A stretch of 64,000 bases of DNA from Paraspadella gotoi (Eukaryota; Animalia; Chaetognatha): positions 26,835,932 through 26,899,931 of the forward strand of contig CM119266.1 in assembly GCA_051294375.1 (NCBI GenBank). Direction: 5' to 3'. Shown here in pieces: positions 3,666-50,362 of the stretch. Each line of letters starts with the position of its first letter. Positions within the stretch are counted from its first letter, which is position 1. The position numbers and the translations under genes were made by a program. The notes under the pieces were generated by a model. The model did not search any database and had not been told where the DNA came from. It saw only the letters and a program-made list of their open reading frames with translations.

Positions 3666-3746
<81 letters not shown>

Positions 3747-5309
3747 TAAATAACGCCACATCTACGGCGACGATGGAAAACAAAAAAAATTTGAATAGTA
3801 AAAAGATAAAAAATGATAAATGGAGACGAAATAAAATGGCGAATAAAAAAGCGTCTGGCTTTTCCTTTACGGCGATCATTGATTTATCTTTCAGGTCTGC
3901 TATCAACGCTTCCCAGATCTGTCTTTCAATTATTCAAGTGGTTCTTCGTTTGGTTTGCGTTGGCTGACGTTGGCCTTTCATCATTGAAATGGCACCGTTT
4001 GCGTCGTTGACGTCATGATGTCAAGCTCTTTCATTGACGACCGCAATTTCATCAGCAACAACTTGGACGTCGATGTTGATAGTTTTTTTTTTTATTGATA
4101 CCGAGTTTTTAATTGCTACCAACTATGGTTTCTATCAATGTCACTCTTACATCTTTTTTTAGTATTTTTGTTCTTTAATTCACAGGAATTGACACAGAGT
4201 AGACATTAATTCAACGACGTCGTTTTCGTCCTCGATTTCGTTGTCGTTGTGTTGTCGACTTGATAGCTATCTGGGACTAAACAATCCTTCTTAATAGGCC
4301 TTCGTAGTTCTTATAGGTCGCGAGCATCTCGCCTTTTTCATTGCCAGAATCCTCCACAAAAAACCTTCGGTTGCCAAACATCATTACTTATTTATCCAGA
4401 GCAAGAAAGGTTTCTCCGCTGCCCCACGTCTCAGGAAATTCAGCCTTTGGTTCGCTTCGTGATACAAATACTTTTTTTTAAAAGAAACTATAAATCACTG
4501 AATTTACAAATATTTTTCTTTAAAAACTATGAAATAGCTCAATTTACTAAAAACTTTAGGGCGCCCGATTTCCGTATCGTGAAGGACCGCGTTTCTCAAA
4601 TACTGCCAGTTACGCATACTGTGACGCTGACATAGGCGCGTGTTTAATCGACGCTGCACGTGGAAAGGCGCGCCTCACGGACGACCCTGACGCGCTGCCA
4701 CAGTGCGCCGCATGCACACTTGGGCGCGGGAGGTGAGACTCGTTCAGCCATGAATATTGAAGGAAGCGACGGGAAGAAATCACCTGGGAAAGCATGGAGA
4801 ATCAAAGAATGGCGACGCATCGTTCGAAGGTTGGTGCAGGAGAAAAGCCTGAGGCCGAAGAGAAACGGAGAAAAGGGATTGAGATTCAGTAAGGATTGAC
4901 GGCTAATGATAAGCCAAGAAGACGAGGTCTAGCGTCTTTTGAGTTAAGAGAAAGAGCAATCGCTATACAATGCTATTTACTATACATACAAGTCAAAGTT
5001 GAAAAGAGATATTCTTATCTGAATCTGAGTAGAAAGGGCAGTAACCTGATCAAGTCACAAGGATGAAATTTACCGGTTTTAATTTAACGCGCAACGAGAA
5101 CAACGCATGACCTTCACCACCGATCCCAACGCATCCAATCCACTCCTCGGGTGTCGACGCGCGGAAGTTCGCCCAAACCGGCAAGTTGCATGCAAATCCC
5201 CGAGGAGTTCCTCGTCCGGATCCCGGAAAAGCAATAAAGACTCACCATTCGACTCGCAGAGGGTCGACGTCACGCCGTCAAGCGAGAGAGCGAAGGCTAC
5301 GCGTCACCC

Positions 5310-11560: not shown

Positions 11561-14500
11561 ATGGATCTTGACTTAGAGCCGGACGTCGATGTGTCGGAGC
11601 GGCCGACGAAACTTCTCCGCCACTTTGCGTCGATGCCGGAAATTTGTTTGAGCGACGCTGGCGAAAAAGAAGATTTCCTCACAGGTATAGAGAGAGCAGA
11701 GAGAGACAGAGTGAGAGAGAGGGAGCAGAGAGAGAGAGAGAGATAGAGAATTCAGTTTTTTCGCCCACCATTTTTATTCATTTAAAAAAAGTAAACGAAA
11801 AGGGAAACTAACCATCTCCCAATCCACCCACAAACCATCTCAACCGCATAAAAATGACATCCACTTCCCCGAAACAAATTTTTTTAATAAATAATTTATC
11901 GCCCTCGAGACTCGCGGACGGGTTTTTCCGACGACGAGGCTCGCTATCACTATCATCTTCATTATCATCTTCATTCTCATTAACATAAATTCGTCGTCCT
12001 CATTCTTTTCATTCCCTTTTCTCTCTCCCTCAAAGAGAAAGACTCGGCCCCTCCCCATCCTCCTCCTCTCCTCCCCTTCCTCTTCATTCTCGTTTCCTCC
12101 TTCGCCTCTGTCGTCCTCTACGTTTTCGACGTCGTCTCGGATCTCCTCCTGGCGACCGTCTACTTCCTCAAGCGTCACGATTGGTGGGCGCGCCTCACCC
12201 TCTTCTTCACTTTAGCGCCGGGATTCGTCGTCGCCGGCGTCTCGATAGCAATAATTCTGCGATTGCCCGGTCTACCGCCGCCGTGGCGGGCGACCGGTTT
12301 GGCGACGGCGCCGTTTCTAATGGGCCCGGCGTTCCTGCGGTTGGAGCGGTGCCGAGCGGCGACGAAGGCTTGGCGGGAAAGGCGAAAAGCGGCGACGGCG
12401 AAACGAAATGCGGCGTCGTTGCGACGAAGAAATCCTCAAACGGATTCTGGATTCGGTTCGACGCCGGAATTCGGCGCCAATTCGGCCGGCGTCACGGATC
12501 GAAACGGCGCCGGGAAATCTCATGGCTCTGTAATCGGGAAACGGTCTTCGCTGTCTTCTTTGCCATCCGACGGCGTCGCGCTTCGACATCATGACGTATT
12601 CGAACGTCAGCGGCCTGAGCCAAATGAGCCCAAGGAAATCCTTCCTTTAACTCACCAATCCAACAACTCACCCTCCATCACGGTGCCTCTCTCCGTCCGT
12701 CTCCGCGCAGCCCCTTTCGCCCTGCGTCGCCGCGTCGACGAGACTTTTCGGGATCTCTCCGTCGACGCCGACGCTGGCTCCCACGGCGTTGTTGTTCTGG
12801 AAGTGCTGCTGGAGGCGTTGCCGCAAATTCTGCTGCAGCTGTACATCATGCTGCGATCCAACCTAATCTCGGGACAACAGATCGTCACGCTGGGAACGTC
12901 GATGCTGACGGCAGTTTTTAGTCTTCAGGTTTGGTTTGGTTTGTTTGTTTTTATTTATTTTTTTTTATTATTTCATGTAAACATTCAGCAATTCTCCGCT
13001 CCGCTTCACCGACGTTGGCTCCTCCTTCTCTCTCCCTCCCTCTCTCCCTCTTCCTCATCTTTTCCCTTTCGTCTCTTCCTCTCTTTCCTCGTCCTCCTCC
13101 TCTCTTTCCTCCGTCTCGTCTCCTGCGTCTTCCTCGTCCTCGTCTCTGCCGTCAGTCTCGGGGTCATCGTCGTCCCGACGACCGACGTCGATCGCTTCGT
13201 CGTCGTCGTCGTCCTCGTCGCCGCCTTCGTCCTCTTCCTCGTCCTCGTCCTGCTGGGATCCAAGATGGCCGACGTCAGGTAGAAGGCGCTTTTTCCTCAA
13301 AGCTACGTTTTTCAATCGTCAAACTCAGCTTCTTAACAGTTTACTAGTAAATGGATGGATTCATTGAGCTCTAAGAATGCATTTTTTATCCAGGATCCGG
13401 GCCCCGTTCCTCAAAATCTTTTTGTGCTACTCGATGGCGATGGTGTTGGCGCTGACATCCGGTTTTTGTTCCGCTAATTTTGCTCTGAAAAAAGGGTCTG
13501 AGGAGAAGTCGAATAATAAGCCGCTGTTTGAAATTAGCCACGATCCTGTTAGTTTTGCCTCACCAAACTTTTCTGTTATAAATTCAACTCCGCCCAATGA
13601 TATTCTGTCGACTATTATTTTATCCAAGCTTTCTCAGTCCGACTTATTTTTTCGTAGCCTTGATGTATGCGATTTCACTCTCCTTTCCATTGGGCATATC
13701 AGTGACAACTTTAATGATAAAATGAAGGAATTTTGGAGAGAAAATGTGCTTTGTGCAACCCACATCTTTGTACAACTTCAGCATATCATTTTTGTTTCAG
13801 GGTCATGGCTGTTGGTGGAAGCAGTAGGCTTATTGGTAATAGGGATGTTGCGACTCTAATTTTGAATTCATTTCTGAATTTATGTATGTACTTTTTTGGC
13901 GAAACTTATATTCCCTCCTGCAATAAAAGCATTTTAGAATAAATTACTTATTAATAAATTACTTATGATTGTAACCCCAAGAAATACATTTCTAATCCAG
14001 GACACGCACTACGTTTATCAAAACCTTTTTGTGCTACGCGCTTTGTTTGACGTTGGCGCTGACTTCCGGTTTCTGTTCTGCCAATTTCGCTCTGACAAAA
14101 AACAATGAGAAGTGGAATTTCTTAAAAGCGTTCAAGCATCGCGTCGATCCACGAGACTCCGCGACGCAAGGATCGAAACAGGATCCTTCAGCGGATTCGA
14201 GGGAACTGTTTACCGTTTCTCTAAACTGGCGGCGAGATCACGTCAAAGCTAATTCAACTCGGTCCGTTGCTACCACACGAAGCCAAATTTGGACCCGAAC
14301 GAGCCTTTCGTCGTCAAACGTCACTCAGTTTCACACTTCACTCCTCGTTCCAAAGATCCCAGACGGAACCGATTTCACCGACAACGTCCCGATCTTCATT
14401 TATCGCGACCTCAACAAATGTGACGAGCATTTCCTCTCGCGCGGCGGCGCCTTCGTCAATGACTTCCGGTCCTGGCTCAGCGCCGGCGACTTATTCGCCA

Positions 14501-14601
14501 ACGTAGCAGAGTTTTGGGCGGAGAACGTCCTCTGCGCGGTGCACTTGTTCGCGCCGCTGGAGCGCCTCGTCTTCGCGTCGGGGGCGTGGCTGTTTGTTTA
14601 G
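11561..14601 (+). CDS. XK-related multi-pass membrane protein (Xkr/CED-8 family); exons 11561-11684, 12036-12928, 12989-13278, then 13394-13859 (A) or 14001-14601 (B)
   Basis: Exons join in phase with GT-AG introns. The translation has XK hallmarks: LYVFDVVSDLLLA..YF....WWARLTLFF..PG, then LEVLLEALPQILLQLYIML, and FWxENV in the last TM region. The start codon is uncertain. Confidence 0.8.
13394..13859 (+). CDS. XK-related gene, terminal exon copy A
   Basis: Acceptor ttttttatccag|G in phase 2 matches the donor at 13278. Reads IRAPFLKIFLCYSMAMVLALTSGFCSANFAL...EFWRENVLCATH...GSWLLVEAVGLLVIGMLRL*. Confidence 0.7.
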
Positions 14602-24626: not shown

Positions 24627-27600
24627 CGCACCTTCAAGTGCAAAGACAACGGAATCTCGACGGAGGTCCTGGCCAACAACCGCTACATGACCCTGCGTTA
24701 CCAAAGCAACCCCCACGCCCCAGGGCGCGGCGAGCGCCGGGGATTCAAGGCCGTTCTCACGGGTGAGTATTCGACGGAAAGTATATATGGTTGGAGCCGG
24801 GTGAGGGAAATACAAAGGGTAAAGTTACCGGCAAGTAAAAAAGTTAGTACTTCATTGTTTTATTGGGTTGCTAATCTCTTTATCGCGCGAGAAAATTAGA
24901 GCGCTTGATCGTGCGTGGGAAGCCGCGTACCTTGGACGCTAAGCGAGTTTGCTCTTGATGCAAGGAAAATTATGGGGGGGGAAAAGGAGGAGGGGAAAAA
25001 AAGGAAAATGAAATTGCTTCATTCGTGAATTAATAAGTCGTTCTGTCGCGAGGGCAATTTTTATGAGCAAAATTATCCGTAATTTAAGTTTAAGCATAGT
25101 TACCGCTAAGTTTAACTCCCTCCGCCCCTCACCTCTGCCTCCCCCTTCCACTTTAAGCCTACGAGACTTTCGGCATCTGCAGCATGTCCAACCACAAGTG
25201 CGAAAACGGACTCTGCATCGACGACGACCTCACTTGCGATCAGATCAACCACTGCGGGGACAACAGCGACGAGGCGCCCAAGCTCAACTGCGTCGGTGAG
25301 ACTGAGGAGGAGGAGGAGGAGGAGTTGTTGAGAGGGTCGTTAGATTGAAGTATTCTTTTACCGGGCAATACTCTCGACCGTGGTGGCCCCAGGACTGTCC
25401 AGTGTAGAACTGTGTACTGGGAACTGGAGTTTCATTGAAAAGAGAAAAATCCCAGCCCGCCGAAATGTGAAGCAAGAGTTAAAACGATAGTTTCACTGAT
25501 TAAATAGAATTTTGGATAATTAATATTCCCGTTGGAGAGAAGAAAAAAGAAATGGGAATGACTTCCGTCCCCATTCACGCCTTATGGTCTCCTTTGGATT
25601 CGTGAAAATTAGTTCAGAGACAGACGCTCAAGACAAACCTTTATGAAATCCATCCTATTTTTCATAAATTATCAGTTTTCTGTTTTACCTCCTAGTAACC
25701 TTAAAAAGGTTTATTTTATTGTTAAATGCTAATTAAAGAGTCAAAAACTTTATTTAACCTCCCGACAAACGTCACTTTGTCCATCTCCCAAGTTTAACTG
25801 TCAAAAACAATTTTTAACTTCCCCCTTACATCACCTGATCACTTAGTTTCTAAACTAAACTAACTCCCATCTTTCCCCTACGCCGGGGGGCCCGCTCCCA
25901 CCTTCTCTCTGATTTACCGCCTTCTCTTATAAGCCTAACCTCTTCCCCATCCCCCCCTCATATCCCGACCCCCGAATTCAACTTCCCGGCAGAAAGAGAT
26001 CGGGAAGGGGCGGACGACCAATTAGATGAAACGGACAGGTGGAAAATTGGAGGAGGAAAAAAAAAGATGTGGGAATCGTGGGGAGAGGGGCGTGGCGTGG
26101 CGTAGGAAGGGAATGTAGGTGTACGTAGATCACTGAAAGATTCTTTTTTGGGAAAAAATAATTTCGTCCTTACTTTTTTATTTTGATGTCTTCTCGTTTT
26201 GAGCGCGAGATGTTCTTCTCCATTTCGTTAACATTTCCTGGTGCCTGCGCAGCCTCGAACTGCCTCGAACTGGTGAGATCTGAATAGCGGCGTTATTCTT
26301 TGACCCTTTTGCACATGCCTTGGTGACCCTCCTGCTGGTGTCCAGTCCACCTACCATCCCGCGTTCGTTCACGTGGCCGTCCTGTGCGCGCGTCCGAATC
26401 GCCTTTTCGCCTTCGGAATTTTTATGCGGACAAAAAAGGAAAGAAAGCACGCATCCCCTTTTGACTCCCCCCCCCTAAATTCAACCGGCGGCGAGAGACC
26501 CAAACATTCCGGACCGTTGACCTTTTCGGGGTCACCGACCCACCCCATGACCTCATCTCCTTACCTTTTTTTTACGTGTTCAGATTGGGTTTATTTTGTC
26601 GCTCTGCGCCGAGAGGTCAGTTCCGCTTTTAATCTTTTCGCTCGGATACTCTTTAACGTTCTGGTTCCTGCTTAAGAGATTTCGCTTGTGTTTTGTTCTG
26701 CTCCGGAAACGAGGTAGGTTTTTTGGTTTTTTTTGGTAAGCCATTCTCTGGTCCTTTCTAAATTCTAGCCACCTCCTGATATTCCAGGTTTCATTGACAA
26801 ACAACCTGGGGTGTCTGTTTGCCTCTTCATCTTTGCTTTTTGCCTTCATTTGCTCGAGGTCAGTGAGGCCATTTTCATTTCTTTATTTTTTTAACCTGAA
26901 ACGTCCTTTCCTATTTCATCTTTATTCGATTCGTGTTTTTTTTTTTTTTTTGTCCCAAAAATTCGTGAAAATCTCATTCTTCATTCTTTAGCCAAATAAA
27001 TCTAGACTTTGAAAAGAAAAGGCTACAAAAAAAAGCGACATCACACATCTTCACAGTCTTCACAGTCTTCACAGTCCTCAATATTAATCCGGCATTTCAA
27101 AAAGATCCGTCGTCCACGAATCTCCCATCCATCCCAGTACCTCGCGCAATCTCTTCCCTCCCTTGAAATATAACCAGCCGCAACCCTCTCAAGCGTCGCC
27201 TCCCCCTCCCCCCTTTTAGACCCCCTTGAACCCGGAGGGACCCCGGTTCGAAACCCAATTCCTTTGCCGGTTCGAGTGACAACTCGGTCGAGAAGAAAAG
27301 ACTGACGAAAAAAAAAAATCCAATTTAAACTGGAAATCTTTTTTTTGGTTGAGAGGAGAAAGGCGAGTGAAAATAATTTTTTTTTAAAAGTTACTTTTTA
27401 TTCAAACCGTTAAATGTATATTACATAATTACTATAATTTTAATTACTCGCTGCTTTTTTTTTTATCGCAAAAAAGATTAATCTGTAAAGAAACGAATAA
27501 GTGTAATTCAAAAACGAAAACTAACAAAAGAAACTTGTGAATAAAGAACAAAAATATAAACAAATATTACGAAAGATACTAGAATCAAGACGAGACTTAT

Positions 27601-30600
27601 AGTCAACAAAACAAAAAACGTTCGAGATTAAAGTTCACAAGAAGTCGAAAAAGAGAATTTTCCTGACGACTACTATTTTAAGTCGCTCTTTCTCTGGTCT
27701 AATTATGGCAGTTTCATTTCCTTCGATCCTTGGTTTTCCCTAACGCAACATAACACTGGAGCAAACCTTATCTAGCCTCAATCCCCCTTTTCCCAACACT
27801 TATTAAAGTCTAACCCCTATGTCTTCCTGGCCCCGTCCGGCCCACCCACTTTTTCCCCCCTTCTCCCCAACTCTCTCTCAATCTTTTCCTTTCTCTCCCT
27901 TCCCCATCAACTTCTTCCTCTCCAACATCAACCTCCTCCTCTTCCTATCGAGCACCTCCAACTCCTCGTCGATCTCCGTGATCCTCTTCCGACTTTTTTT
28001 ATCGAGATCTTCGAGATTCCCGTCGACGCCGTCGTCTTCGGTCGGCGTCACGTCACCATCGTCGTCGTCCTCGTCGTCTTTCTCCGCCTCGCTCCGCGCC
28101 AACGCTTCCACTTGATGGCGCAGCAGCTTCCGGTAGGATTTGCCCATAAACTTTCCCTCGCGCGCCTCAATCTTCCCGGCGTCAATGGCAGCGGCGATGG
28201 AGGCCGGAGTGAGAACTGGGCGTCGAGAGAATCGGAATTAGAAAAGCACAGTTGTCATTGGGCTAAATTGAACACGATATTACACATTCGCTGACTTATT
28301 AATAACAATAAATAAGACCGGCAGAGGGTAAATTCTATAGTCAAAACTCGGTAAAGAACTTAAAGGTTCAAGGTTAAGGGTAAAGGATTAAATTAAGCCA
28401 TCCACAAAGGCAAAACATGTTATTATCAAAAAATCCGAATGGGCAAAAGGTAAAATTTAGCCGAAACCCTTCGTTTACTCCACCCTCAATCTCCACTCGA
28501 TTGCCGCCAATCTGACCTGGAAATTCTGTGACGGCGTTTTTCTCGCTGATCGTCGCGCCTTTGTCCGTCCACTTGGCCTCTTTCTTGTTTTTGGCATCCC
28601 CGTTTTCGGCCTCCTTTACGTCTTTAGTTGCTTTTGAGTCTTTAGCTTCAGTTTCTTTGGCCTTATTTGGGTCCGTTTTCCCTCCAATCTCGCCGGCCTC
28701 CACCAACTTTTGTACTTGATCTCGCAACAGCTTCGTATACTGTTTGCCCATGAAGTTGCCTGAAAACAATTGGTAATATTGAACATTTAAGATTTTAATA
28801 ACTGGGGTTAAATACTTTTTAAAACTAAAATTATTGTTGACCGACTTTTAATCGTCAGTAACTTTTCTTACACGATCACCGGCCAAAAAAAAAAATAACT
28901 GCTACAACTACCACTGCAGACACATAAACTCCCGCCAAAACTTACCGACCCTTGACTCGAGCCGGCCGTCGGCGATGGCGGCCTCCACATCTTCGTTGGT
29001 CAAAATCGAAAATTCCTTGACGGCGTTTTTGGCGCTGATCGTAGCGCCCTTCTCGTTCCACTTGGCGTCGGAGGACATGACGAGAAAAGGAGAGGGCGTG
29101 TCCGGACTAAAGGAGACGTCGCGAAACTAGAGGACGAATTCGAGGGAAAACTAAAAAAATATAAATTTAATTACGTGTATATTAAAATTTTAAATTAAAA
29201 ATTTTGATAAAAAGAAATCAAATGATTAAAAATGATTAAAAGTCAATTAGTTAAATTAAGCTGATAAATTTATAAACTGGTTCAATCTATTTCCAATTAT
29301 CTTCGACAAAAAAAAGAAATCTCAGTTCAAAATCCAAGGTCGATTAAAAATGCTGCTCCGATGAACGAATGATCCTCTTCTTTCACAGACGAAATTTTTT
29401 CAGGATTGAATAAATAGAAAAAAAAAGAATAACCACGATCGAGGCTCTGACTGTTCACAAAAAATTTAAAAGAAGTCAAAAATTTAAAAGAAGCCTTTTT
29501 TAAGGTGAAGGGAGTATGGTGGACTAAAATCCACCAACCGTTCATCTGCGGCNNNNNNNNNNNNNNNNNNNNNNNNNNNNNNNNNNNNNNNNNNNNNNNN
29601 NNNNNNNNNNNNNNNNNNNNNNNNNNNNNNNNNNNNNNNNNNNNNNNNNNNNNNNNNNNNNNNNNNNNNNNNNNNNNNNNNNNNNNNNNNNNNNNNNNNN
29701 NNNNNNNNNNNNNNNNNNNNNNNNNNNNNNNNNNNNNNNNNNNNNNNNNNNNNNNNNNNNNNNNNNNNNNNNNNNNNNNNNNNNNNNNNNNNNNNNNNNN
29801 NNNNNNNNNNNNNNNNNNNNNNNNNNNNNNNNNNNNNNNNNNNNNNNNNNNNNNNNNNNNNNNNNNNNNNNNNNNNNNNNNNNNNNNNNNNNNNNNNNNN
29901 NNNNNNNNNNNNNNNNNNNNNNNNNNNNNNNNNNNNNNNNNNNNNNNNNNNNNNNNNNNNNNNNNNNNNNNNNNNNNNNNNNNNNNNNNNNNNNNNNNNN
30001 NNNNNNNNNNNNNNNNNNNNNNNNNNNNNNNNNNNNNNNNNNNNNNNNNNNNNNNNNNNNNNNNNNNNNNNNNNNNNNNNNNNNNNNNNNNNNNNNNNNN
30101 NNNNNNNNNNNNNNNNNNNNNNNNNNNNNNNNNNNNNNNNNNNNNNNNNNNNNNNNNNNNNNNNNNNNNNNNNNNNNNNNNNNNNNNNNNNNNNNNNNNN
30201 NNNNNNNNNNNNNNNNNNNNNNNNNNNNNNNNNNNNNNNNNNNNNNNNNNNNNNNNNNNNNNNNNNNNNNNNNNNNNNNNNNNNNNNNNNNNNNNNNNNN
30301 NNNNNNNNNNNNNNNNNNNNNNNNNNNNNNNNNNNNNNNNNNNNNNNNNNNNNNNNNNNNNNNNNNNNNNNNNNNNNNNNNNNNNNNNNNNNNNNNNNNN
30401 NNNNNNNNNNNNNNNNNNNNCTTTTTCTATTCTTCTTGTCTAACTATACCAAATAAATAATATTTTTTATAGTGAAGACGAATCCCCATTAAACCTTTTT
30501 CACCCCTAAATCTTAATGCGTAATGCAATAGTTTTTATTCACTATACTTACTATCATCCGCAGAGATATCGCTCGTTCCAAAATTCTCTTCCTCCCTCGA

Positions 30601-31694: not shown

Positions 31695-34600
31695 CTCTGT
31701 CTGTTGTCTGTTCGCTCGCTCTCTATCGACTTCAATATAAACCTATTTATTAATTTGCTCGTTGTCCTGTCATGTGCTCATTGTAATAATTTAAACGTTT
31801 AAACTTCGTGATTTGTAACAAGACCGTCCTTTCCTGTCAATTTAAACCATGTTGTAAATAGCCCCTCCTATGATACTATAATTTCCTTTTATAATATATT
31901 ATTATTAGGTATCCAGCGGCGTAAATACGGTGCCTTGAATATCTTCGTGTTAGGAATTAATTATACGTAGTAGTGACGTCACGGTTTTCGTCGTTTTTAT
32001 TTTTTTAAATTTTTAGTAATATTTTAAATTTTACAAGTAAAAGTCTTCATTTAAATTTTTTTTAGTATCCATTCATATTTGCTCATTCTTTGGTTATGGG
32101 AAATAAATAAACGTCATTTATTAATCGGTGTTTATGAAAACTAAATAGAGGGCGTAGGTATTGTAGAAACGATGCTACGAGATTTACCCCCCCCCACAAA
32201 AAAATTAAAAAAAGGAGCCATCTACTCCGAGTAAAAGAATATCTCTTTTTTTCTGCATGAATTTCCGAAGAATTTTTTTTTCTTAGTACAGGATGTCGTG
32301 ATATTACGTGCCAAAAGTACTTGTCGCGCACGCGTGTGTGCGAACACGTTCCTCTTGTTCCCAGGACACGCGCACCAAGAAAGAAAGGGAGAAAAAAATC
32401 CGAACTTTTTTCCTTTTTCGCCCTTCTCACTCTCTCTCACGATCCCGGATAAGAATGATACTAGAATCTCTTTCTCTCTCCCTCTCTTTCTCTCTCTCTC
32501 TCTCTCNNNNNNNNNNNNNNNNNNNNNNNNNTCATCTCTTCTCCTCTCGTCTCTCTCTCTTCTCTCTCTTCGCGTCCTCTCTCTTTTCTCTCTCGACTCT
32601 CCCCTCATCTTTCTCGCTCTCTTTTCGCTCCATCCTTTGATCCTCGTTCTCTGCTTGAATCTCTCATCTCACCACCTAACTGCACTCACCTCTTTCTCTC
32701 TCTTGCGCTCTCTCGTCTCTTCTCCTCGCACATCTTCTTCTCTCGTTCCCTAGCGATACCCTCTGGCTTCTCCTCGTCTCTTCTCCCGACGCCCTACTTT
32801 CATTTCTTCTCTCGCTCATCTTTCCCCTCACTACTCACAAATATACGACTTCACGCCCTTTCCCCCAACCTCCTCAACACTCGGATGAAAATACACAATA
32901 TGAGACCCGACGGACATCTCGCGTCTTCACGCACACATCCAAACGCTGTCGTTCTCCTCTTCTCCCCCCCTTAAAAAACGAAGAGCGTAGAGGACAACGC
33001 AGTACCATACGGGGGCGCTCTCTCTGTTCCTCTATCTCTCTCCTGATCTCTCTCTCGCTCTCCTCTCTCTCCTATCTTCTTCTCCTCGTTCTCTTTTTTT
33101 TTTTCTCTCTCTTTTTTTATCTCTCTCACTCTCTCCACCCGAAAAGTCGATGGGAACTTATTATAGGATGACAATACAATTTTCCTTTTTTCGCAACATA
33201 GGTCTTCAAAAAAATAAGGATTTTATACACGTATGACGGAATTTGGGTATGTCGTTTTACCAGTTTATAAAGTTATATTTTCTAAGCAATAAAACCTGTT
33301 TAAAAAAACTTTTAAAAAGACATTCAATTATATTCATGAACAACAATACTATTGGAAAAAACTCTCAAAGTTAATAATTAATCTTTTAAAAAAGTTTTTC
33401 CTAATCTTTTCTCCTCCTCGCTTTTTACTCTGCATTTAGATATTGAGTGTAATAAAAAAACTGAAACGAGATTCAAAAAACTTTAAAACCCTTTTTAGCA
33501 GCGGTTGTCTCTACTCTTACTTCCTTCCCAACATTAATTCGTGATCGGGGGAACTAGCAATCGGATTGACATCGATTAACCTACTAGAGGAGAATAAGTA
33601 GCACTTCCCTTTTTTTTAACTCAAACATTTTGGCCTCTAATTTTTTTATTCTTTCTTCTTCCAATCCCACTTTTATCTCTCTTTTCCGCCACTCTTCTTT
33701 CCATCTTTTCATCGTTTTTTCCCCCTTTTTTCTTTCCCTTTCTTTTCTTTTTCTCTTCCTTTTTTTTCTTTCTCCACTTTATTTCGGTTTCTTATTTCTT
33801 TTCCATCAAGCTTTTTTTTGTTTTTTTCTCTTCTGTTCGATTCATTTTTCTATTTTATTGTCCCTTTCTTGTTGATCCTAATATCGTTTCTTCTTTTTGT
33901 TTTTCTCTTTTTTTTTTCTTTTTTTGTTTTTTATTTCTTTTTTTAGTTTCCTTTCCACCCATTATCCTTTTTTTTTTGCTTTTTTTCTGTCCTCCTCGGA
34001 ACCCGCAACAGGCCTTAATTGCGTCGGCCACCCCCCCACCCCCCTTGTATTTCTGCTCGGTATTTTTTTGTGTTTCTTTTTTGTATTTTATTTTCTACCC
34101 TTATTATTTTTTTTTCTTATTCTTATTTTCTTTTTGTCCTTGTTTCTCCGTCTGCTTCCTTTCCCCTCACCCTCTCGTACCCCTAATCCTTTTTCCCTTC
34201 TTTTTTTTTCCCTTCCCTCTCCCCCTACTTTTCCCCCCCCTCTCTCTCCTCCTTTACCCTCCTTTTTTTTCTATTCGCCTTTTTCTTCCTCGGCACCGGT
34301 CTTCCCCCTTCCCTTCCTCTTTCCCCTCTTATCCTCCTATTTTGTTATCTTTTTTCCTTTTTCTCGTTCCTTTTCTCCTCCTCTTTTTCTTATTTCTCCT
34401 CGTTCCTTTTGTTTTTCCTTTTCACTCTCCTCTTCTCCCTCTCTACATCACAATATCACGACTTCACGCCTTTCCCCCCACCTCCTCACTCGGATGAAAA
34501 TCACAATATGAGACCCGACGACATCTCGTCTTCACGCACAACATCACCTGTCGTCTCCCCTTAAAACGAAGAAAAGCNNNNNNNNNNNNNNNNNNNNNNN

Positions 34601-37425
34601 NNNNNNNNNNNNNNNNNNNNNNNNNNNNNNNNNNNNNNNNNNNNNNNNNNNNNNNNNNNNNNNNNNNNNNNNNNNNNNNNNNNNNNNNNNNNNNNNNNNN
34701 NNNNNNNNNNNNNNNNNNNNNNNNNNNNNNNNNNNNNNNNNNNNNNNNNNNNNNNNNNNNNNTTTTTCTCTCTCTCTCTCCACCCGAAAAGTCGATGGGA
34801 ACTTAATATAGGAATGAAAAATACAATTTTCTTTTTCGCAACATAGGTCGTTCAAAAAAATAAGATTTTATACACGTATGACGGAATTTGGGTATGTCGT
34901 TTTACCAGTTTTATAAGTTTATATTTTCTAAGCCAATAAAACCTGTTTAAAAAAACTTTTAAAAAGACATTCAATTATATTCATGAACAACAATACTATT
35001 GGAAAACTTCAAAAGTTAATAATTAATCTTTTTAAAAAAAGTTTTTCCTAATCTTTTTCTTTTGCCTCCTCGCTTTTTTAACTCTGCATTCTAGATATTG
35101 AGTGTAATAAAAAAAATGAAACGAGATTCAAAAAAAAATTTAAAACCCTTTTTAGCCAGCGTTGTCTCTACTCTTACTTCCTTCCCCAACATTAATTCGT
35201 GATGCGGAACTTGCAATGATTTGACATCGATTAACCGTACTAGAGACGATAGTAGACTTCCCTTTTTTTTAACTCAACATTTTGGCCTCTAATTTTTTTA
35301 TTCTTTCCTTCTTCCATCCCAACTTTTATCTTCTCTTTTCCGCCAACTCTTTCTTTCCATCTTTCTTTCTTTTTTTTCCCCCTTTTTTCTTCGCCCAACT
35401 TGAAGTAGGACCCGAATTGGTGGNNNNNNNNNNNNNNNNNNNNNNNNNGAGAGGGAGAAGAGGAGAGTGAAAAGGAAAAACAAAAGGAACGAGGAGAAAT
35501 AAGAAAAAGAGGAGGAGAAAAGGAACGAGAAAAAGGAAAAAAGATAACAAAATAGGAGGATAAGAGGGGAAAGAGGAAGGGAAGGGGGAAGACCGGTGCC
35601 GAGGAAGAAAAAGGCGAATAGAAAAAAAAGGAGGGTAAAGGAGGAGAGAGAGGGGGGGGAAAAGTAGGGGGAGAGGGAAGGGAAAAAAAAAGAAGGGAAA
35701 AAGGATTAGGGGTACGAGAGGGTGAGGGGAAAGGAAGCAGACGGAGAAACAAGGACAAAAAGAAAATAAGAATAAGAAAAAAAAATAATAAGGGTAGAAA
35801 ATAAAATACAAAAAAGAAACACAAAAAAATACCGAGCAGAAATACAAGGGGGGTGGGGGGGTGGCCGACGCAATTAAGGCCTGTTGCGGGTTCCGAGGAG
35901 GACAGAAAAAAAGCAAAAAAAAAAGGATAATGGGTGGAAAGGAAACTAAAAAAAGAAATAAAAAACAAAAAAAGAAAAAAAAAAGAGAAAAACAAAAAGA
36001 AGAAACGATATTAGGATCAACAAGAAAGGGACAATAAAATAGAAAAATGAATCGAACAGAAGAGAAAAAAACAAAAAAAAGCTTGATGGAAAAGAAATAA
36101 GAAACCGAAATAAAGTGGAGAAAGAAAAAAAAGGAAGAGAAAAAGAAAAGAAAGGGAGTCGGCGCCGTCGTCGGCTTCGTCGTTCTCGTCATCCTCCTCG
36201 TCATCCTCATCGTCTCCGTCATCGCCTGTTGCTTGTGTCGTTCCCGTTTCTCTCCGCACGATGACAGGTGAGTCTCCATTCGATTCTCCTCTTACGCCTG
36301 TATCACTGTGTTACAGCCTGATCCCAAGCTCAGGGACTGCTTATATTGAACGGTTCTATCACTATCTCTTAACCATTATTTTTGTCTCTGCAATTCCTTT
36401 CATTCGTTTGTTAATTCGTTCGTGAATTAATTAAGTTATTACTTTATTCAATTATCCCTTGTACTCCATCCGCACATTCTTTCCCTTAATTCCATTCATT
36501 CAATAGTTCTCCCTCTTCAGTAAGCAAACCAACTCTTCGAACGCAAGAAGGGATATTTTTGCGATCGATTCTTTTGATTCGTCGTTTTTGTTCTTCCTCG
36601 CTTTCCCTTCAATCTCCTCTTCGCCTCCGTCCCGCCTCTACACCCCAGTCATTCATACCCATCCCCCCATTTCCATCTAATTACCTCCCCCCCAATTCGC
36701 TCCTCCTTCCTCCACCCACAAATCCCTTTCCCATCCCGCGATCCCCGCTTTCTCTCTCCCCAGGTACGAAGACAGTCCCGGCTTGGGCTTCGGCTACGGA
36801 GGGGAACGCCTCTTCGGCGTCCTCCAAGGAACGGCGCCCGTCGCCGGAGGCGCCGAGTTGCCCAAGACGACGACGACGGCGACCGCGCCCCCTCACGTAG
36901 TGACCAACGACGCCGGTAACTGTGGTGATGCTTTGGTTGTATTTTTGAGCGTTCACTTGAAAATGTAAATGGGTGGATTCGAACGCGAGACCTTCCTCGT
37001 CTCGAGAAGAAACCGCGATCGCCGAACCGCGGCCGGAGTTAACGACGCGTGGCCACGCCCCCTTTGTCATCGTCGTCGTCGACGTCGCGTGCGAAGACGA
37101 GAAGAATATCGCAGTCGCTGTATTGACTAATTACTAATAATCGCTGTTTAGTAAAGGAAAAGTAAATAAAAAAAGGCCACTATATATATTTTTCCGCAAT
37201 ATTTAATTAAGGGGAAAAGATTAATTTCGTGAGACGCGGAGAAAAAAATGCGGAAAAGGGAAGCGTCTGAATTATGAAAATCCAGTTAATGGCGCATGAA
37301 AAGCAACGTTAATGGGTCCGTTGGTCCCGTCATTTGTTCCGCGACCAGACTCGGACGTTGATGCTAATTTCCTGTTGGTTGCTGGTTTTTGCCGCAAAAT
37401 GAAAGTTGCTGCGCCTCATTCCCTT

Positions 37426-37689: not shown

Positions 37690-39289
37690 CACAGTACCTG
37701 ACCTAAAATCGATCTGCTTAAGACCTGAGCAACAACAAAAACACAATTTGTTCACCGCGATTTTCTTCGTTCGTATTGTCTGTCTTATTGAGACTTATTC
37801 AGACACAGATAGTCGTCTCATTTCTCCTGGCTTTCTCCCCAAGGAGTTTTCTCTCACAACCTTTTTTTACTCATCGCCGGTGTTAACCTCTAACCATTAT
37901 TCTTCCTTCCCCCCCCNNNNNNNNNNNNNNNNNNNNNNNNNCCACCAATTCGGGTCCTACTTCAAGTTGGGCGTCGGCGCCGTCGGTCGGCTTCTCGTCT
38001 CGTCATCCTGCCTCACATCCCACTCGATCTCCGTCATCGCCTGTTAGCTTTGATCGCCTCCCCGTTTCTCTCCGCACGATGACAAGGCGAGTCTCCATTC
38101 GATTCTCCTCTTACGCCTGTATCTCGGTGTGTTACAGCCTGCATTCCCAAGCTCATGGACCTGGCTTATATTGAACGTTCTATCACTATCTTCTTAACCA
38201 TTATTTTTTGTCTCTGCAATCCTTTCAAATTCGTTTGTTAATTCGTTCGCTGAATTAATTAAGTTATTACTTATTCAATTATCCCTTGTACTCCATCCGC
38301 ACATTCTTTCCCCTTAAATTCTATTCATTCAATAGTTCTCCTCTTCATAAGCAAACCAACTCTTTCGAAACGCAAGAAGGGATTATTTTTGCCGATCGAT
38401 TCTTTTGCATTCGTCCCGTATTTTAGCTCCTCTTCCTCGCTTACCTTCAATCTCCTCTCTCGCCTCTGCGTCCCGCCTTCTTACACCCAGTTCATTCATA
38501 CCCACCCTTCATTTCCATCTAATTACCCCCCCCATTCCCCTCCTTCCTCCACCCCACAAAATTCCTTTCCCAATCCCGCCGATCCCGCCTTTCTCTCTCC
38601 GCCAGGTACGAAGACCAGTCCCGGAACTGGGCTTCGGGCTACGGATGGAACGCCTCTCGGCGTCCTCCAAGGAAACGGCGCCACCCGCTCGGCCGGCAGG
38701 CGCCGAGTTGCCCAAGACGCACGACGACGGCTCGACCGCGTCCCCCCCCACGTAGTGACCAACGACGCCCGGTAACTGTGGTGCATGCCATTTACGGTTT
38801 GTATGTTGAGCGCTTTCACTTTGAAAATTGTAAATGCGCGTGGATCGAACGCGAGACCTCCTCGTTCGAGAAGAAACGCGATCGCGAACCGCGCGATCTG
38901 AGTTAACGCACCGTGCCACGCCCCTTTGTCATCTCGCGCGACGTCGCGTGACGAAGACGAAAGAATATGCAGTCGCATGTATTGACTAATTTACTAATAA
39001 TCGCTGTTTAGTAAGGAAAATATGTAAATAAAAAAGGCCACATATAAATAATATTTTCCGCATATTTAATTTAAGGGAAAAAGATTAATTTCGTGGAGAC
39101 GCGGAGAAAAAAAGCGGAAAAGGGAACGCCTTGAATTATGAAAACCAGTTAATGGCGCATAAAAGCAACGTAATGGTCGTTGGTCCGTATTGTTCCGCGA
39201 CCAGACTCGGACGTTGATGCTAATTCCTGGGTGTTGCCTGGTTTTTGCCCGCAAATTTGAAAATTGCTGCCCCTCATCCTCTTCTATTT

Positions 39290-46985: not shown

Positions 46986-48413
46986 ATGGAGGATAACAAC
47001 GCCGAAGTCTTCGTTCCCGCGTCAGGATCGCCAAGATCTCGGAGATCCCCTCAAGGCTCGCCAGGGCGCCGCGCAACGAGCGACCCGCTTGTCGTTTACA
47101 AAGCGGTCATCCTCATCGCTGGTCCTCAGAAGGGAACCCGGTTTCGCCCGCTCTCCTTGGACATTCCCAAGCCCCTCTTCCCCGTCGCCGGGCAACCTAT
47201 GATCAAGCATCACATCGAAGCTTGCATGAAAGTCCCCGGCCTGCGGGAAATTCTCATTATCGGCTCCTTTCAACCGGGAGACGCCATCGCCAAGTTCGTG
47301 CAACAAATGCAGCAAGAGTTCCACGTTTCCATCAGATATTTGCAAGAGTACACCTCCCTCGGCACAGGCGGCGCCATCTACCATTTCCGCGATCAAATCA
47401 TGTCCGGCAACCCGGAGGCCTTTTTCGTTATGAACGCCGACATTTGTGCCAACTTTCCACTCGTTGACGTCGTCAACTTCCACAAGAGCATAGCTTCGAG
47501 ACGTTTCGAGGCCGACGGAGCCCCTTCGGACCTCGGCGTCATGACCATTCTCGGAACGGAAGCCACTCCCGCACAGGCCTCCAATTACGGCTGCATCGTC
47601 GCCGACAAGCAAACGCATGAGGTGCTGCACTATCGCGAAAAGCCCGAAACGTTTATCAGCTCCACCATCAATTGCGGCGTCTACCTCCTCAATCGCTCCA
47701 TCTTCGGTCTCATCAAGGAAGTTCTTATCGATAACCAAGACGAGCAATACAGCATGATCGTGGACGGAGTCATCCCCTCGTGCTCTCCCCCGGAGTGCAT
47801 CTCCCTCGAGCAGGATATATTTCCGATTCTCGCTTCCTCCAAATCTTTCTTCGTTTGCACGACCTCTCTTTTCTGGTCCCAGCTGAAAACTCCTTCCGCC
47901 GCCGTTTACGCGAATCGTCACTACTTAAAGTTGTTTCGCGAGCTCTCGCCCGCGCGACTTGCCGCCAGAGGCGACGGCGACTGCGGTCCCACCATCTTCG
48001 GGGACGTGATCATCCATCCAACGGCGAAAGTTGATCCATCCGCGGTTCTGGGACCCAACGTGACGATCAGCGCTGGCGCGGTAATCCACTCGGGGGTCCG
48101 TATCCGGGAGTCGATCGTCCTCGAAGATGCGACCGTTCATGAACACTGCTGCGTTCTTTACACCATCATCGGTTGGCGCGTCGTCGTCGGCGCCTATAGT
48201 CGCATCGAGGGAACCCCCGTTGATCCTGACCCCAATAAACCCTTCGCGAAGATCGAATGCAAAAATCTTTTTAACTCCGAGGGTCAGCTCAATCCTTCCA
48301 TCACCATCCTCGGATCCAACGTCGTCGTGCCCCCGGAGGTCGTCATTCTCAACACCATCGTTCTCCCGCACAAATCGCTGTCTGATTCTTACAAGAATCA
48401 AATCATTCTTTGA
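46986..48413 (+). CDS. GMPPA: Mannose-1-phosphate guanyltransferase alpha (regulatory subunit), intronless CDS
   Basis: 475-aa ORF with KAVILIAGPQKGTRFRPLS.D.PKPLFPVAG.PMIKHHIEAC, LGPNV hexapeptide repeats and the C-terminus SITILG...VLPHKSL..SYKNQIIL typical of GMPPA. Confidence 0.93.
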   Translation: MEDNNAEVFVPASGSPRSRRSPQGSPGRRATSDPLVVYKAVILIAGPQKGTRFRPLSLDIPKPLFPVAGQPMIKHHIEACMKVPGLREILIIGSFQPGDAIAKFVQQMQQEFHVSIRYLQEYTSLGTGGAIYHFRDQIMSGNPEAFFVMNADICANFPLVDVVNFHKSIASRRFEADGAPSDLGVMTILGTEATPAQASNYGCIVADKQTHEVLHYREKPETFISSTINCGVYLLNRSIFGLIKEVLIDNQDEQYSMIVDGVIPSCSPPECISLEQDIFPILASSKSFFVCTTSLFWSQLKTPSAAVYANRHYLKLFRELSPARLAARGDGDCGPTIFGDVIIHPTAKVDPSAVLGPNVTISAGAVIHSGVRIRESIVLEDATVHEHCCVLYTIIGWRVVVGAYSRIEGTPVDPDPNKPFAKIECKNLFNSEGQLNPSITILGSNVVVPPEVVILNTIVLPHKSLSDSYKNQIIL

Positions 48414-49102: not shown

Positions 49103-50362
49103 ATGTCGGGTACTTACGCCAGCAGCGCTAAGGGCTACATCATTTTCACTGGGACTTCTCATCCTGACTTAGCCAACAAAATAGCTAATCGATTGGGGAC
49201 GGGACTAGGGAAAGCCTCAGTCTATCAAAAAGCGAACAAGGAGACAATCGTCGAAATCGAAGAGTCCGTCCGAGGAAAAGATGTCTTCATCATCCAAACG
49301 GGATCCAAGGATCCAAACAACTACATCATGGAGCTCATGGTCATGACGTACGCCTGTAAAACGGCTTCGGCAAAACGCATCGTTGGCGTGATTCCCTATC
49401 TTCCCTACTGCAAGCAGAGCCAGATGCGAAAACGCGGCTCCATCGTCTGCAAACTTTTCGCCGAGATGTTGGTCAGATCCGGTCTGACGCACGTCATCAC
49501 CATGGACCTCCATCAAAAGGAAATCCAAGGCTTCTTCAACGTCCCCGTCGACAACTTGCGCGCCTCTCCTTTTCTCATTCAGTACATCCAGGAACAAATC
49601 CCCGACTGGAGAAACGCCGTCATCGTCGCCCGATCTCCTTCCGCCGCTAAGCGAGCGACATCTTACGCCGAGCGAATTCGGCTTGGCATTGCCGTAATCC
49701 ACGGCGAGAACAAAGAAGCCGAGGCGGACGAGCAGGACGGTCGTCACTCCCCGCCGCCCTTTGACGAGGCGGAAGCGGTGGTGCCTCCGCTCCGTACCTC
49801 CAACCTCGGCCCAGAATCCGCCGCCCCTAACTTTGACGCCATCAACGAGAGAATCCAGCGATCATCCTCGACCCGTACGAGATCCGTTTCGGTGTCCGGA
49901 TGCACCAACGCCTCACGCTCTGAACCCTCCCAGCCCTACCGGCCGTCCCTTGTGGAGCCGGGCAACTTCTTCGCTCCGTTTCCACTACTCGTGGCCAAGG
50001 AGAAGCCGCCCATCAATGTCGTCGGCGATGTGGGCGGCAAAATCGCCATCATCATCGACGACATAGTCGATGACGTCGGCAGCTTCATCGAGGCGGCAGA
50101 GATTCTTAAGGAGCGCGGCGCCTACAAAGTCTACGTGATGGCCACCCACGGCCTGCTTTCAGGAGACGCCCCTCGGAGACTCGAGGAGTCCTCGATAGAT
50201 GTCGTCGTCGTCACCAACACCGTCCCGCACGAGGTTCAGAAGATGCAGTGTCACAAAATCAAGACAGTCGACATCGACGTCATGCTCAGCGAGTCGATCA
50301 GGAGGATTTACCACGACGAGTCCATGTCCTACTTGTTCAGGAATATCTCAGTTGACGATTAA
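49103..50362 (+). CDS. PRPSAP: Phosphoribosyl pyrophosphate synthase-associated protein (PRPSAP1/2), intronless CDS
   Basis: 419-aa ORF with [49 protein letters not shown] and [26 protein letters not shown], all typical of the associated protein rather than catalytic PRPS. Confidence 0.93.

Follow-up and report, generated by a model that had tools for sequence, protein, structure and literature searches.

Gene structure

The stretch of DNA analysed here (the window; 64,000 nucleotides of contig CM119266.1, GenBank assembly GCA_051294375.1, with positions counted from its first letter) carries at 27878 to 29078 of its minus strand a three-exon gene, whose product holds two copies of a small domain akin to a family of prokaryotic hypothetical proteins. 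Joining the three exon segments of the minus strand gave an in-frame coding sequence (CDS) of 714 nt for a protein of 237 amino acids without cysteines. Exon 1 (28946..29078, minus strand, as are all parts of the gene) begins with the ATG at 29078-29076 and contains codons 1-44 and the first base of Gly45, after which the donor GTAAGT opens intron 1 (28760..28945; 186 nt, 32% GC), splitting repeat 1 at SRV^GNF. Exon 2 (28517..28759) encodes the end of repeat 1, a disordered K/E-rich linker (linker 1) and the first third of repeat 2, and is followed by the donor GTCAGA of intron 2 (28216..28516; 301 nt, 39% GC), which splits repeat 2 at EFP^VLT. The remainder of repeat 2, an acidic linker and a basic, charged C-terminal helix are encoded by exon 3 (27878..28215), which ends in the TGA stop at 27880-27878. 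Both introns are of the GT-AG type and in phase 1, and both acceptors are AG dinucleotides behind pyrimidine tracts.

The gene is present in one copy in the window, and in the window's list of open reading frames (ORFs) it is visible merely as fragments of 56, 131 and 89 amino acids. An earlier reading of the same DNA (the original prediction) had proposed the three in-phase exons with these coordinates, the 237-residue product and its appearance as mere fragments in the ORF list, all of which was borne out when the segments were joined. The three-exon locus is thus a real, conserved and spliced protein-coding gene of an animal genome that was previously unannotated. A chance ORF pattern or a pseudogene was considered and rejected, given the frame-restoring GT-AG introns, the colinearity with eight relatives and the domain-specific conservation described below.

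The two repeats were assigned to residues 4-63 (domain 1, 28704..29069, minus strand, spanning intron 1) and 105-164 (domain 2, 28100..28580, minus strand, spanning intron 2), and each is predicted to fold as a beta-alpha-alpha-beta-beta-alpha winged helix-turn-helix (HTH). They are identical at 36 of 60 residues, and local alignment of the two protein halves scored 188 as compared to 36 +/- 5.9 in 500 shuffles (z = 25.8). At the DNA level 121 of 180 positions are identical, with third codon positions matching at only 31 of 60, which indicates that the internal duplication is old. Furthermore, as the two introns lie at non-equivalent positions of the repeats, and each in one repeat only, both must be younger than the duplication. 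Residues 191-233 (27893..28021, minus strand) were modelled by AlphaFold as a single long helix, a probable coiled-coil dimerisation element, and the region of this helix contains the basic runs KKSRKR and RKRRR, which might possibly serve as nuclear localisation signals. The two 60-residue repeats, the acidic linker with a coiled-coil-like tail, and the gain of the introns after the duplication had each been part of the original prediction, and each held up.

Relatives and intron history

When the spliced product was searched against 5.8e9 proteins, eight full-length two-domain relatives were found (214-236 amino acids, 46-51% identity), all of them on short contigs from JGI or Logan, along with weak matches to prokaryotic-type proteins of ~112 amino acids, at E=4e-3 from the window protein alone. 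One of the relatives (P0005) is encoded on contigs of JGI sample 3300019005 and run ERR1719193, which we take to be Tara Oceans eukaryotic metatranscriptomes. Across its exon junctions the window gene is colinear with all eight, with no insertions or deletions. The identity between the window protein and its orthologues was 65-71% in the domains (71% in domain 1), 42% in the coiled coil and 12-16% in the linkers, a domain-specific conservation that suggests purifying selection on a working protein. In a neighbour-joining (NJ) tree the first repeats clustered together across all species (68% bootstrap) and the second repeats formed no clade of their own; the grouping of first repeats across species places the duplication before the divergence of these species.

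With a profile made of the nine two-domain proteins only (A2), 1.84e9 cluster representatives were searched exhaustively in HMMER, and just 175 clusters were matched at E<=1e-3. The top of these matches consisted of the two-domain cluster, exon-like fragments and single-domain proteins of eukaryote type, and prokaryote-type proteins followed from E=3e-10 on. The term "eukaryote-type" is used here for relatives classed by their sequence, without taxon names; among the matches listed, none of these proteins had a name or an NCBI or UniRef source, and no named eukaryotic protein was among the matches listed from the collection of 5.8e9 proteins. Scanning JGI metagenomes with the two-domain alignment confirmed nothing, and the 5' end of the transcript-type contigs of a relative showed no match to the published spliced leader of calanoid copepods (PMC4664967). 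Nothing specific came from a look at the literature for horizontal gene transfer in copepods.

Genomic fragments were recovered that correspond exactly to single exons of the window gene, namely P0141-P0143 for exon 1, P0136, P0138 and P0140 for exon 2, and P0139 for exon 3. The exon 2 fragments run on into intron sequence past "...KEFP". P0136 is the same as P0002 over 67 residues up to the intron position of the window gene and then diverges, as does P0138 from P0134/P0135 (the P0005 cluster) after 71 residues, and P0142 equals P0007 exactly over residues 1-45, up to the position of intron 1, before diverging. The relatives' genes are thus seen both with introns, in genomic sequence, and without, in transcripts, which demonstrates, for sister species, the presence of the two introns and their removal by splicing. 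Two more distant genomic homologues (L004; L005-L007) were found in JGI samples 3300055727 and 3300055527 and in run SRR28961193. As seen in L004 and L005, they lack intron 1, whereas the codon and phase of intron 2 are matched by an intron of their own, and therefore intron 2 is the older of the two. In the metagenomic eukaryotic contig L005, inverted-repeat sequences resembling miniature inverted-repeat transposable elements were seen immediately downstream of the homologous gene, at 3680-4100.

The single-domain proteins of eukaryote type fall into more than one layout. In four of them (P0144, P0146, P0147 and P0233, termed group ii) a single domain and a coiled coil are combined with a long RGG/acidic tail, and P0200 has a single domain and a coiled coil with a K/E-rich tail. 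The contig of P0144 (L014/L015) ends in poly(A), and a genomic copy (L008, P0286; 34% GC) lies beside an ORF whose translation looks like an exon of a split ClpX-like gene. These single-domain proteins keep the prokaryotic motif GNPY. Their domain reaches up to 62% identity with that of archaeal-type members, with which they have the exact 12-residue GNPYYKLIRSEV in common. Both eukaryote-type groups, with one domain and with two, have "EFPxLT", where prokaryotic members have "EFGLT", one residue fewer. A further, divergent protein of eukaryote type, P0145 (JGI/Logan contigs of ~1 kb), is made of two units of domain plus coiled coil, and from this layout it appears to be an independent duplication of the whole unit and not of the domain alone.

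The prokaryotic family

A single-domain profile (A1) gathered 1,558 clusters at 90% identity. Among its matches listed, nearly all were 108-114 amino acids long, carried no precomputed Pfam domain and, where named at all, were called "hypothetical protein". The prokaryotic members follow the pattern W-x-[RK]-KGATLSDK[TS]A-x-x-E[FY]GLT ... [HY]GNP[WY]-x-[RK]L[LI]R-x-EVE, with a coiled coil behind it. Their named sources were metagenome-assembled genomes of Streptosporangiaceae, Trebonia, Rokubacteria and Methanosarcinales, and one match was confirmed by tblastn on the complete chromosome of Desulfonema magnum (NZ_CP061800.1). A scan of GTDB, with one genome per species and a narrow prokaryotic alignment as the query, found at least 153 loci in at least 153 species of archaea and of at least 10 bacterial phyla. 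The archaeal carriers included Methanophagales/ANME-1, Methanoperedens, Methanosaeta, Methanomicrobiales and Halobacteria, and the bacterial ones Chloroflexi, Desulfobacterota, Myxococcota, Planctomycetota, Acidobacteriota, Actinomycetota, Gemmatimonadota, Cyanobacteria, Rokubacteria and Methylomirabilis.

Among the 1.84e9 proteins, profile A2, which contains eukaryote-type sequences only, matched members of prokaryote type with E-values from 3.2e-10 to 1e-8. Every prokaryotic member has the domain and then a heptad-rich helix, as does the animal protein, whose helix aligns with those tails. Judged from these profile matches and alignments, the domain and tail of the window protein are homologous to the prokaryotic family of ~112 amino acids. 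With two domains and 237 residues the protein stands outside the single-domain format of ~105-120 residues, and it is a derived architecture of the prokaryotic family. The original prediction had described such a family and had named a lack of prokaryotic homologues as a point that would speak against its interpretation; the family exists, and the homologues were found.

The neighbourhoods of 84 prokaryotic loci (L001, L009-L013 and L016-L095) were surveyed. No conserved operon partner was found in them, and no family of neighbours occurred in more than nine loci. The commonest neighbours were SEC-C-motif proteins, PRiA4_ORF3 (fused to a serine recombinase in one case), HATPase_c_4/HTH proteins, a CXC-rich protein, DUF6398 and the BREX protein PglZ, and an IS110 transposase, RecD2, NYN and BrxA were also seen nearby. 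Since no partner is conserved and the neighbours are of mobile-element and defence types, the genes of the prokaryotic family stand alone, in variable neighbourhoods reminiscent of mobile elements or defence islands. Two fusion proteins were observed as well, P0342 (HATPase_c_4 with the domain, a single case) and P0198 (an unknown N-terminal domain with the domain). Neither the window protein nor the prokaryotic members searched reached a threshold in Pfam, NCBIfam, PHROGs or PADLOC; apart from coiled-coil noise, the matches were to HTH_17 and excisionase models and stayed below threshold. No relative was found in a pattern scan of IMG/VR with the prokaryotic alignment, nor any match in a scan of bacterial and archaeal genomes with the eukaryote-type patterns.

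Predicted fold

The window protein was modelled with AlphaFold2 from an alignment of 83 sequences. In the model both repeats had a block predicted local distance difference test (pLDDT) score above 90 (91-94 over residues 11-60 in domain 1), both linkers were below 50, and the C-terminal helix reached a block pLDDT of 90-96 over residues 201-230. A model of the domain alone (pLDDT 88, predicted template modelling score 0.70) consisted of strand 12-14, helices 15-21 and 27-36, strands 41-46 and 49-55 and helix 56-68. The best superposition on a solved structure was with Rad14, the yeast XPA (5lcl_A; probability 0.97, query TM-score (TMq) 0.63, root mean square deviation (rmsd) 2.0 A over 60 columns), at 20% identity and a Foldseek E of 0.22, and around it in the ranking stood winged helices of the MarR, PadR and SarA types. 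Among predicted viral structures (BFVD) the top matches were phage MerR-like HTH, Excise, AlpA and PrtN proteins, with TMq of 0.6-0.72 and rmsd of 1.4-2.5 A. The full two-domain model gave only weak winged-HTH matches (MarR, PadR, SarS), because the orientation of the domains is undefined.

At the level of curated families, 10 of 78 family members matched HTH_17, all below threshold (best E 0.0035), and the window protein itself matched no HTH family. The excisionase family phrog_2907 was matched by one archaeal-type member at a sub-threshold E=0.022, and coiled-coil models of Pfam matched many members weakly. A winged helix of TFIIF-alpha, which came up in sequence-profile searches of the PDB, was rejected as non-significant (E=0.22), the remainder of those matches being coiled-coil noise. 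XPA_C, MerR and Xis stand together in one "putative DNA-binding domain" fold class, SCOP a.6.1. From the predicted topology and the superpositions, the domain probably belongs to this MerR/excisionase/XPA-C structural class, with no curated family assigned. A fold of the MerR/XPA-C kind had been guessed beforehand; it fits the AlphaFold topology and the MerR-, Xis- and Rad14-like superpositions obtained with Foldseek, none of which was significant at E<=1e-3 (best E 0.0099).

Genomic setting

Near the gene, runs of N occur at 1998-2022 and 29553-30420 only, so that 2023-29552 is ungapped. An exon of an LDL-receptor class A (LDLa) type (25157..25345, plus strand; Pfam Ldl_recept_a, E=4e-8) and an XK-related gene (11984..13279, plus strand) lie on the same ungapped contig as the gene, and farther along the scaffold, also on the plus strand, are genes of FAM92, GMPPA, PRPSAP, kinase and Tudor/PHD types. 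This gene content (LDLa, XK-related, FAM92) is that of an animal. The CDS of the gene has 54% GC and 70% GC at third codon positions (GC3), close to its GMPPA-like (55/69%) and PRPSAP-like (55/71%) neighbours, and the introns resemble the surrounding non-coding DNA in composition. The gene is physically integrated in the animal chromosome sequence, and its sharing of one ungapped contig with animal genes, together with the host-like GC3 and the AT-rich introns, makes contamination or mis-scaffolding very unlikely. Bacterial contamination was also rejected in view of the domain-specific conservation. The lodging of the gene in animal DNA and the LDLa exon near 25158, both claimed earlier, are therefore upheld. 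On the promoter side an assembly gap of 868 N (29553..30420), 475 bp upstream of the start codon, leaves the gene not joined by sequence to what follows.

It had also been proposed that the gene is nested antisense in a receptor intron. The sole candidate for a downstream receptor exon is a transmembrane-like segment at 36101-36268, recognised by eye from its translation, which overlaps a 709-nt inverted repeat next to N gaps. As the only downstream candidate lies there, nesting in a receptor intron is no more than possible. The inverted repeat itself is perfect (33735-34443 and 35449-36157, 100% complementary, arms 1005 nt apart), has N gaps beside it at 34578-34762 and 35424-35448, and is probably a palindromic assembly artefact.

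Several other features of the window were observed. Similar ORFs occur in tandem at 36.1-38.0 kb and 38.0-39.9 kb, near 25-N gaps, for example 36559-36900 and 38389-38775, and on the minus strand 36681-37070 and 38509-38919, pointing to a tandem duplication that has diverged or to collapsed haplotypes. The GMPPA-like gene (475 amino acids; 46986-48413, plus strand) and the PRPS-associated-protein-like gene (419 amino acids; 49103-50362, plus strand) are each a single uninterrupted ORF, which is unusual among animal genes, and share a GC3 of ~0.7 with the gene studied here. Two neighbouring plus-strand ORFs (13377-13859 and 14029-14601) have alike signal-peptide-like starts (…LALTSGFCSANFAL…) and alike ends (…FW(R/A)ENVLCA.H.F…SG.WL.VEA). 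They could be paralogous exons of a membrane receptor, arranged in tandem. Microsatellites of (CT)n/(GA)n are very abundant throughout the window, where they are seen as SLSLSL and ERERER ORFs. An Rfam search of the whole window gave no RNA family at the gathering threshold.

Discussion

Taken as a whole, the findings are best explained by a real, spliced gene for a protein with two HTH domains, which goes back to an old transfer from a prokaryote and whose product would bind DNA as a dimer, and we put the probability of this explanation at about 0.6. Prokaryotic proteins of the one-domain form presumably dimerise by their coiled coil in order to bind DNA. By analogy, the C-terminal helix of the window protein would form a coiled-coil dimer, and the dimer would then offer up to four HTH modules to DNA. 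The basic runs, KKSRKR and RKRRR, would bring the protein into the nucleus, where it would be a DNA-binding factor specific for sequence or structure, or an architectural one.

In the history that we favour, a gene for one domain and a coiled coil would have passed from a prokaryote into the ancestor of a marine eukaryote group, where it would have taken on eukaryotic features, its single-domain form surviving with RGG/acidic tails. In one lineage the domain would have been duplicated in tandem, after which intron 2 and then intron 1 would have been gained, and the gene would since have been kept under purifying selection. A transfer is favoured by the breadth of the prokaryotic family as opposed to the few eukaryote-type clusters, with no named eukaryotic match among those listed, as well as by the mobile contexts of the prokaryotic genes and the closeness of the single-domain eukaryote-type proteins to archaeal-type members. 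If it occurred, it was probably old and came before the domain was duplicated, before either intron was gained and before several lineages diverged. The presence of relatives in several marine lineages, some with the same intron positions, means that it was neither recent nor private to this species, and shifts the choice between vertical and horizontal descent to a deeper node. The original prediction had the transfer going into this animal; integration and prokaryotic homologues speak for that part of it, whereas the animal was not its sole recipient, and we infer the direction from the distribution and diversity of the family. Its interpretation was thus largely right, and is corrected here to an old and shared transfer whose direction is a probable one, with nesting as a possibility. 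A more specific version, in which a mobile-element-linked HTH of MerR/Xis kind with its coiled coil was captured once by the ancestor of a marine animal or eukaryote clade and is now an expressed family of nuclear DNA-binding proteins, with one- and two-domain forms, outside the searched libraries, is put forward tentatively, at slightly less than even odds.

Several observations weigh against the favoured history or the fold on which its mechanism is modelled. Foldseek gave no match at E<=1e-3 with the domain model, a shortfall that is expected of a domain of only ~60 residues, and no family member had a curated profile above threshold in the libraries searched. The same shortness of the domain bears on the trees, which are NJ only. 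The tree of domains is unrooted, with 74% bootstrap for the two-domain clade and 67% for this clade together with group ii, and the repeats of the window protein are 40-53% identical to all prokaryotic subgroups alike, so that no donor lineage can be named. The eukaryote-type relatives are known by their sequence without a taxon, and the call of an animal comes from gene content. As several eukaryote-type lineages have an old intron in common, the family might conceivably have originated in early eukaryotes and been lost many times, and the missing named homologues in eukaryotes could partly reflect a failure to annotate a small, intron-split gene.

These last points lead to the view that the family began in eukaryotes, or long before there were animals, and came down vertically with much loss and poor annotation, prokaryotes being its recipients or ancient relatives and the window gene an ordinary lineage-restricted nuclear protein. 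The occurrence of eukaryote-type proteins in no fewer than three architectures (two domains, one domain with an RGG tail, and P0145), from several samples, an intron 2 common to divergent genes, the modest support of the unrooted tree, and a fold class that includes the C-terminal subdomain of eukaryotic XPA would all suit such a descent. Yet only a couple of dozen of the 150 representatives listed from the 175 clusters at E<=1e-3 appear from their sequence to be of eukaryote type, the rest of those listed appearing to be of prokaryote type, and members occur in archaea and at least 10 bacterial phyla (at least 153 species), while no eukaryotic protein among the matches listed has a name. The identity of up to 62% between single-domain proteins and archaeal-type members, along with the exact GNPYYKLIRSEV, is closer than a split at the base of cellular life would lead one to expect, and the Pfam scan gave no XPA_C match. 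We therefore regard vertical descent as unlikely, if still deserving attention.

A prokaryote-to-eukaryote transfer might also have happened twice or more, with the two-domain group and the RGG-tailed single-domain group arriving separately. Group ii keeps GNPY and comes up to 62% identity with archaeal-type members, as opposed to 40-53% for the two-domain group, and the mobile contexts of the prokaryotic family (IS110, serine recombinase/PRiA4_ORF3, BREX PglZ) speak for repeated entry; nevertheless, both groups have "EFPxLT" in place of "EFGLT" and formed one bipartition in 67% of the NJ bootstraps, which makes separate arrivals improbable in our opinion. An artefact, whether bacterial contamination, mis-scaffolding, a pseudogene or a chance ORF pattern, we regard as extremely improbable. 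It could be suspected from the 868-N gap 475 bp upstream, from artefact-like structures nearby such as the perfect 709-nt inverted repeat, and from the lack of annotation, the gene being unannotated and the two flanking proteins that were checked being missing from the protein collection. Against this, a single ungapped contig, which carries animal genes, holds the whole gene and ~26 kb of DNA 3' of it, two AT-rich GT-AG introns restore a frame that is colinear with eight relatives, GC3 is as in host genes, and conservation follows the domains.

If the transfer is true, it would represent a rare DNA-binding factor, rather than an enzyme, that was acquired horizontally and fixed in animals, and it would mean that regulatory or architectural proteins too can be domesticated after passing from a prokaryote to an animal. 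The two introns would allow a short sequence of intron gains to be dated, in a gene presumably without introns when it arrived, with intron 2 widely shared and intron 1 confined to closer relatives. The case further illustrates how small, intron-split genes escape annotation, and it brings to light a sizeable protein family (more than 1,500 clusters at 90% identity), spread over archaea, many bacterial phyla and some eukaryotes, that is unmodelled in the libraries searched.

Of the known systems, the prokaryotic WxxKGATLS family is the closest, as the W, KGAT(I/L)S, A, E, LT, G and LLR positions are conserved in the window domain, and the order of domain and then coiled coil and the predicted fold are alike. 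The window protein differs from it in its tandem domains, long disordered charged linkers, spliceosomal introns and animal setting, as well as in having "FMGKxY" for "HGNPW" and one extra residue (EFPxLT). With MerR proteins and excisionases (Xis, AlpA, HTH_17) the domain shares a predicted beta-alpha-alpha-beta-hairpin-alpha topology, and small DNA-binding modules from mobile-element contexts fit this class; unlike MerR, the family has no effector-binding C-terminal domain of the MerR type, and unlike Xis, no integrase partner is conserved beside the prokaryotic genes at the 84 loci. The resemblance to the DNA-binding domain of XPA/Rad14 is one of fold only (5lcl_A), with no demonstrable family membership, and the window protein differs from XPA_C in lacking a match to it in Pfam, a zinc-finger subdomain and cysteines.

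Genes transferred from prokaryotes to animals that later gained introns are known from bdelloid rotifers, nematodes and arthropods, and most well-supported transfers of this kind concern enzymes. Like these genes, the one described here is integrated, host-like in codon composition, has gained introns, is conserved among related species and, to judge from transcript-type contigs, appears to be expressed in relatives. It differs from them in that its product is not an enzyme but a small, internally duplicated, putative DNA-binding protein.

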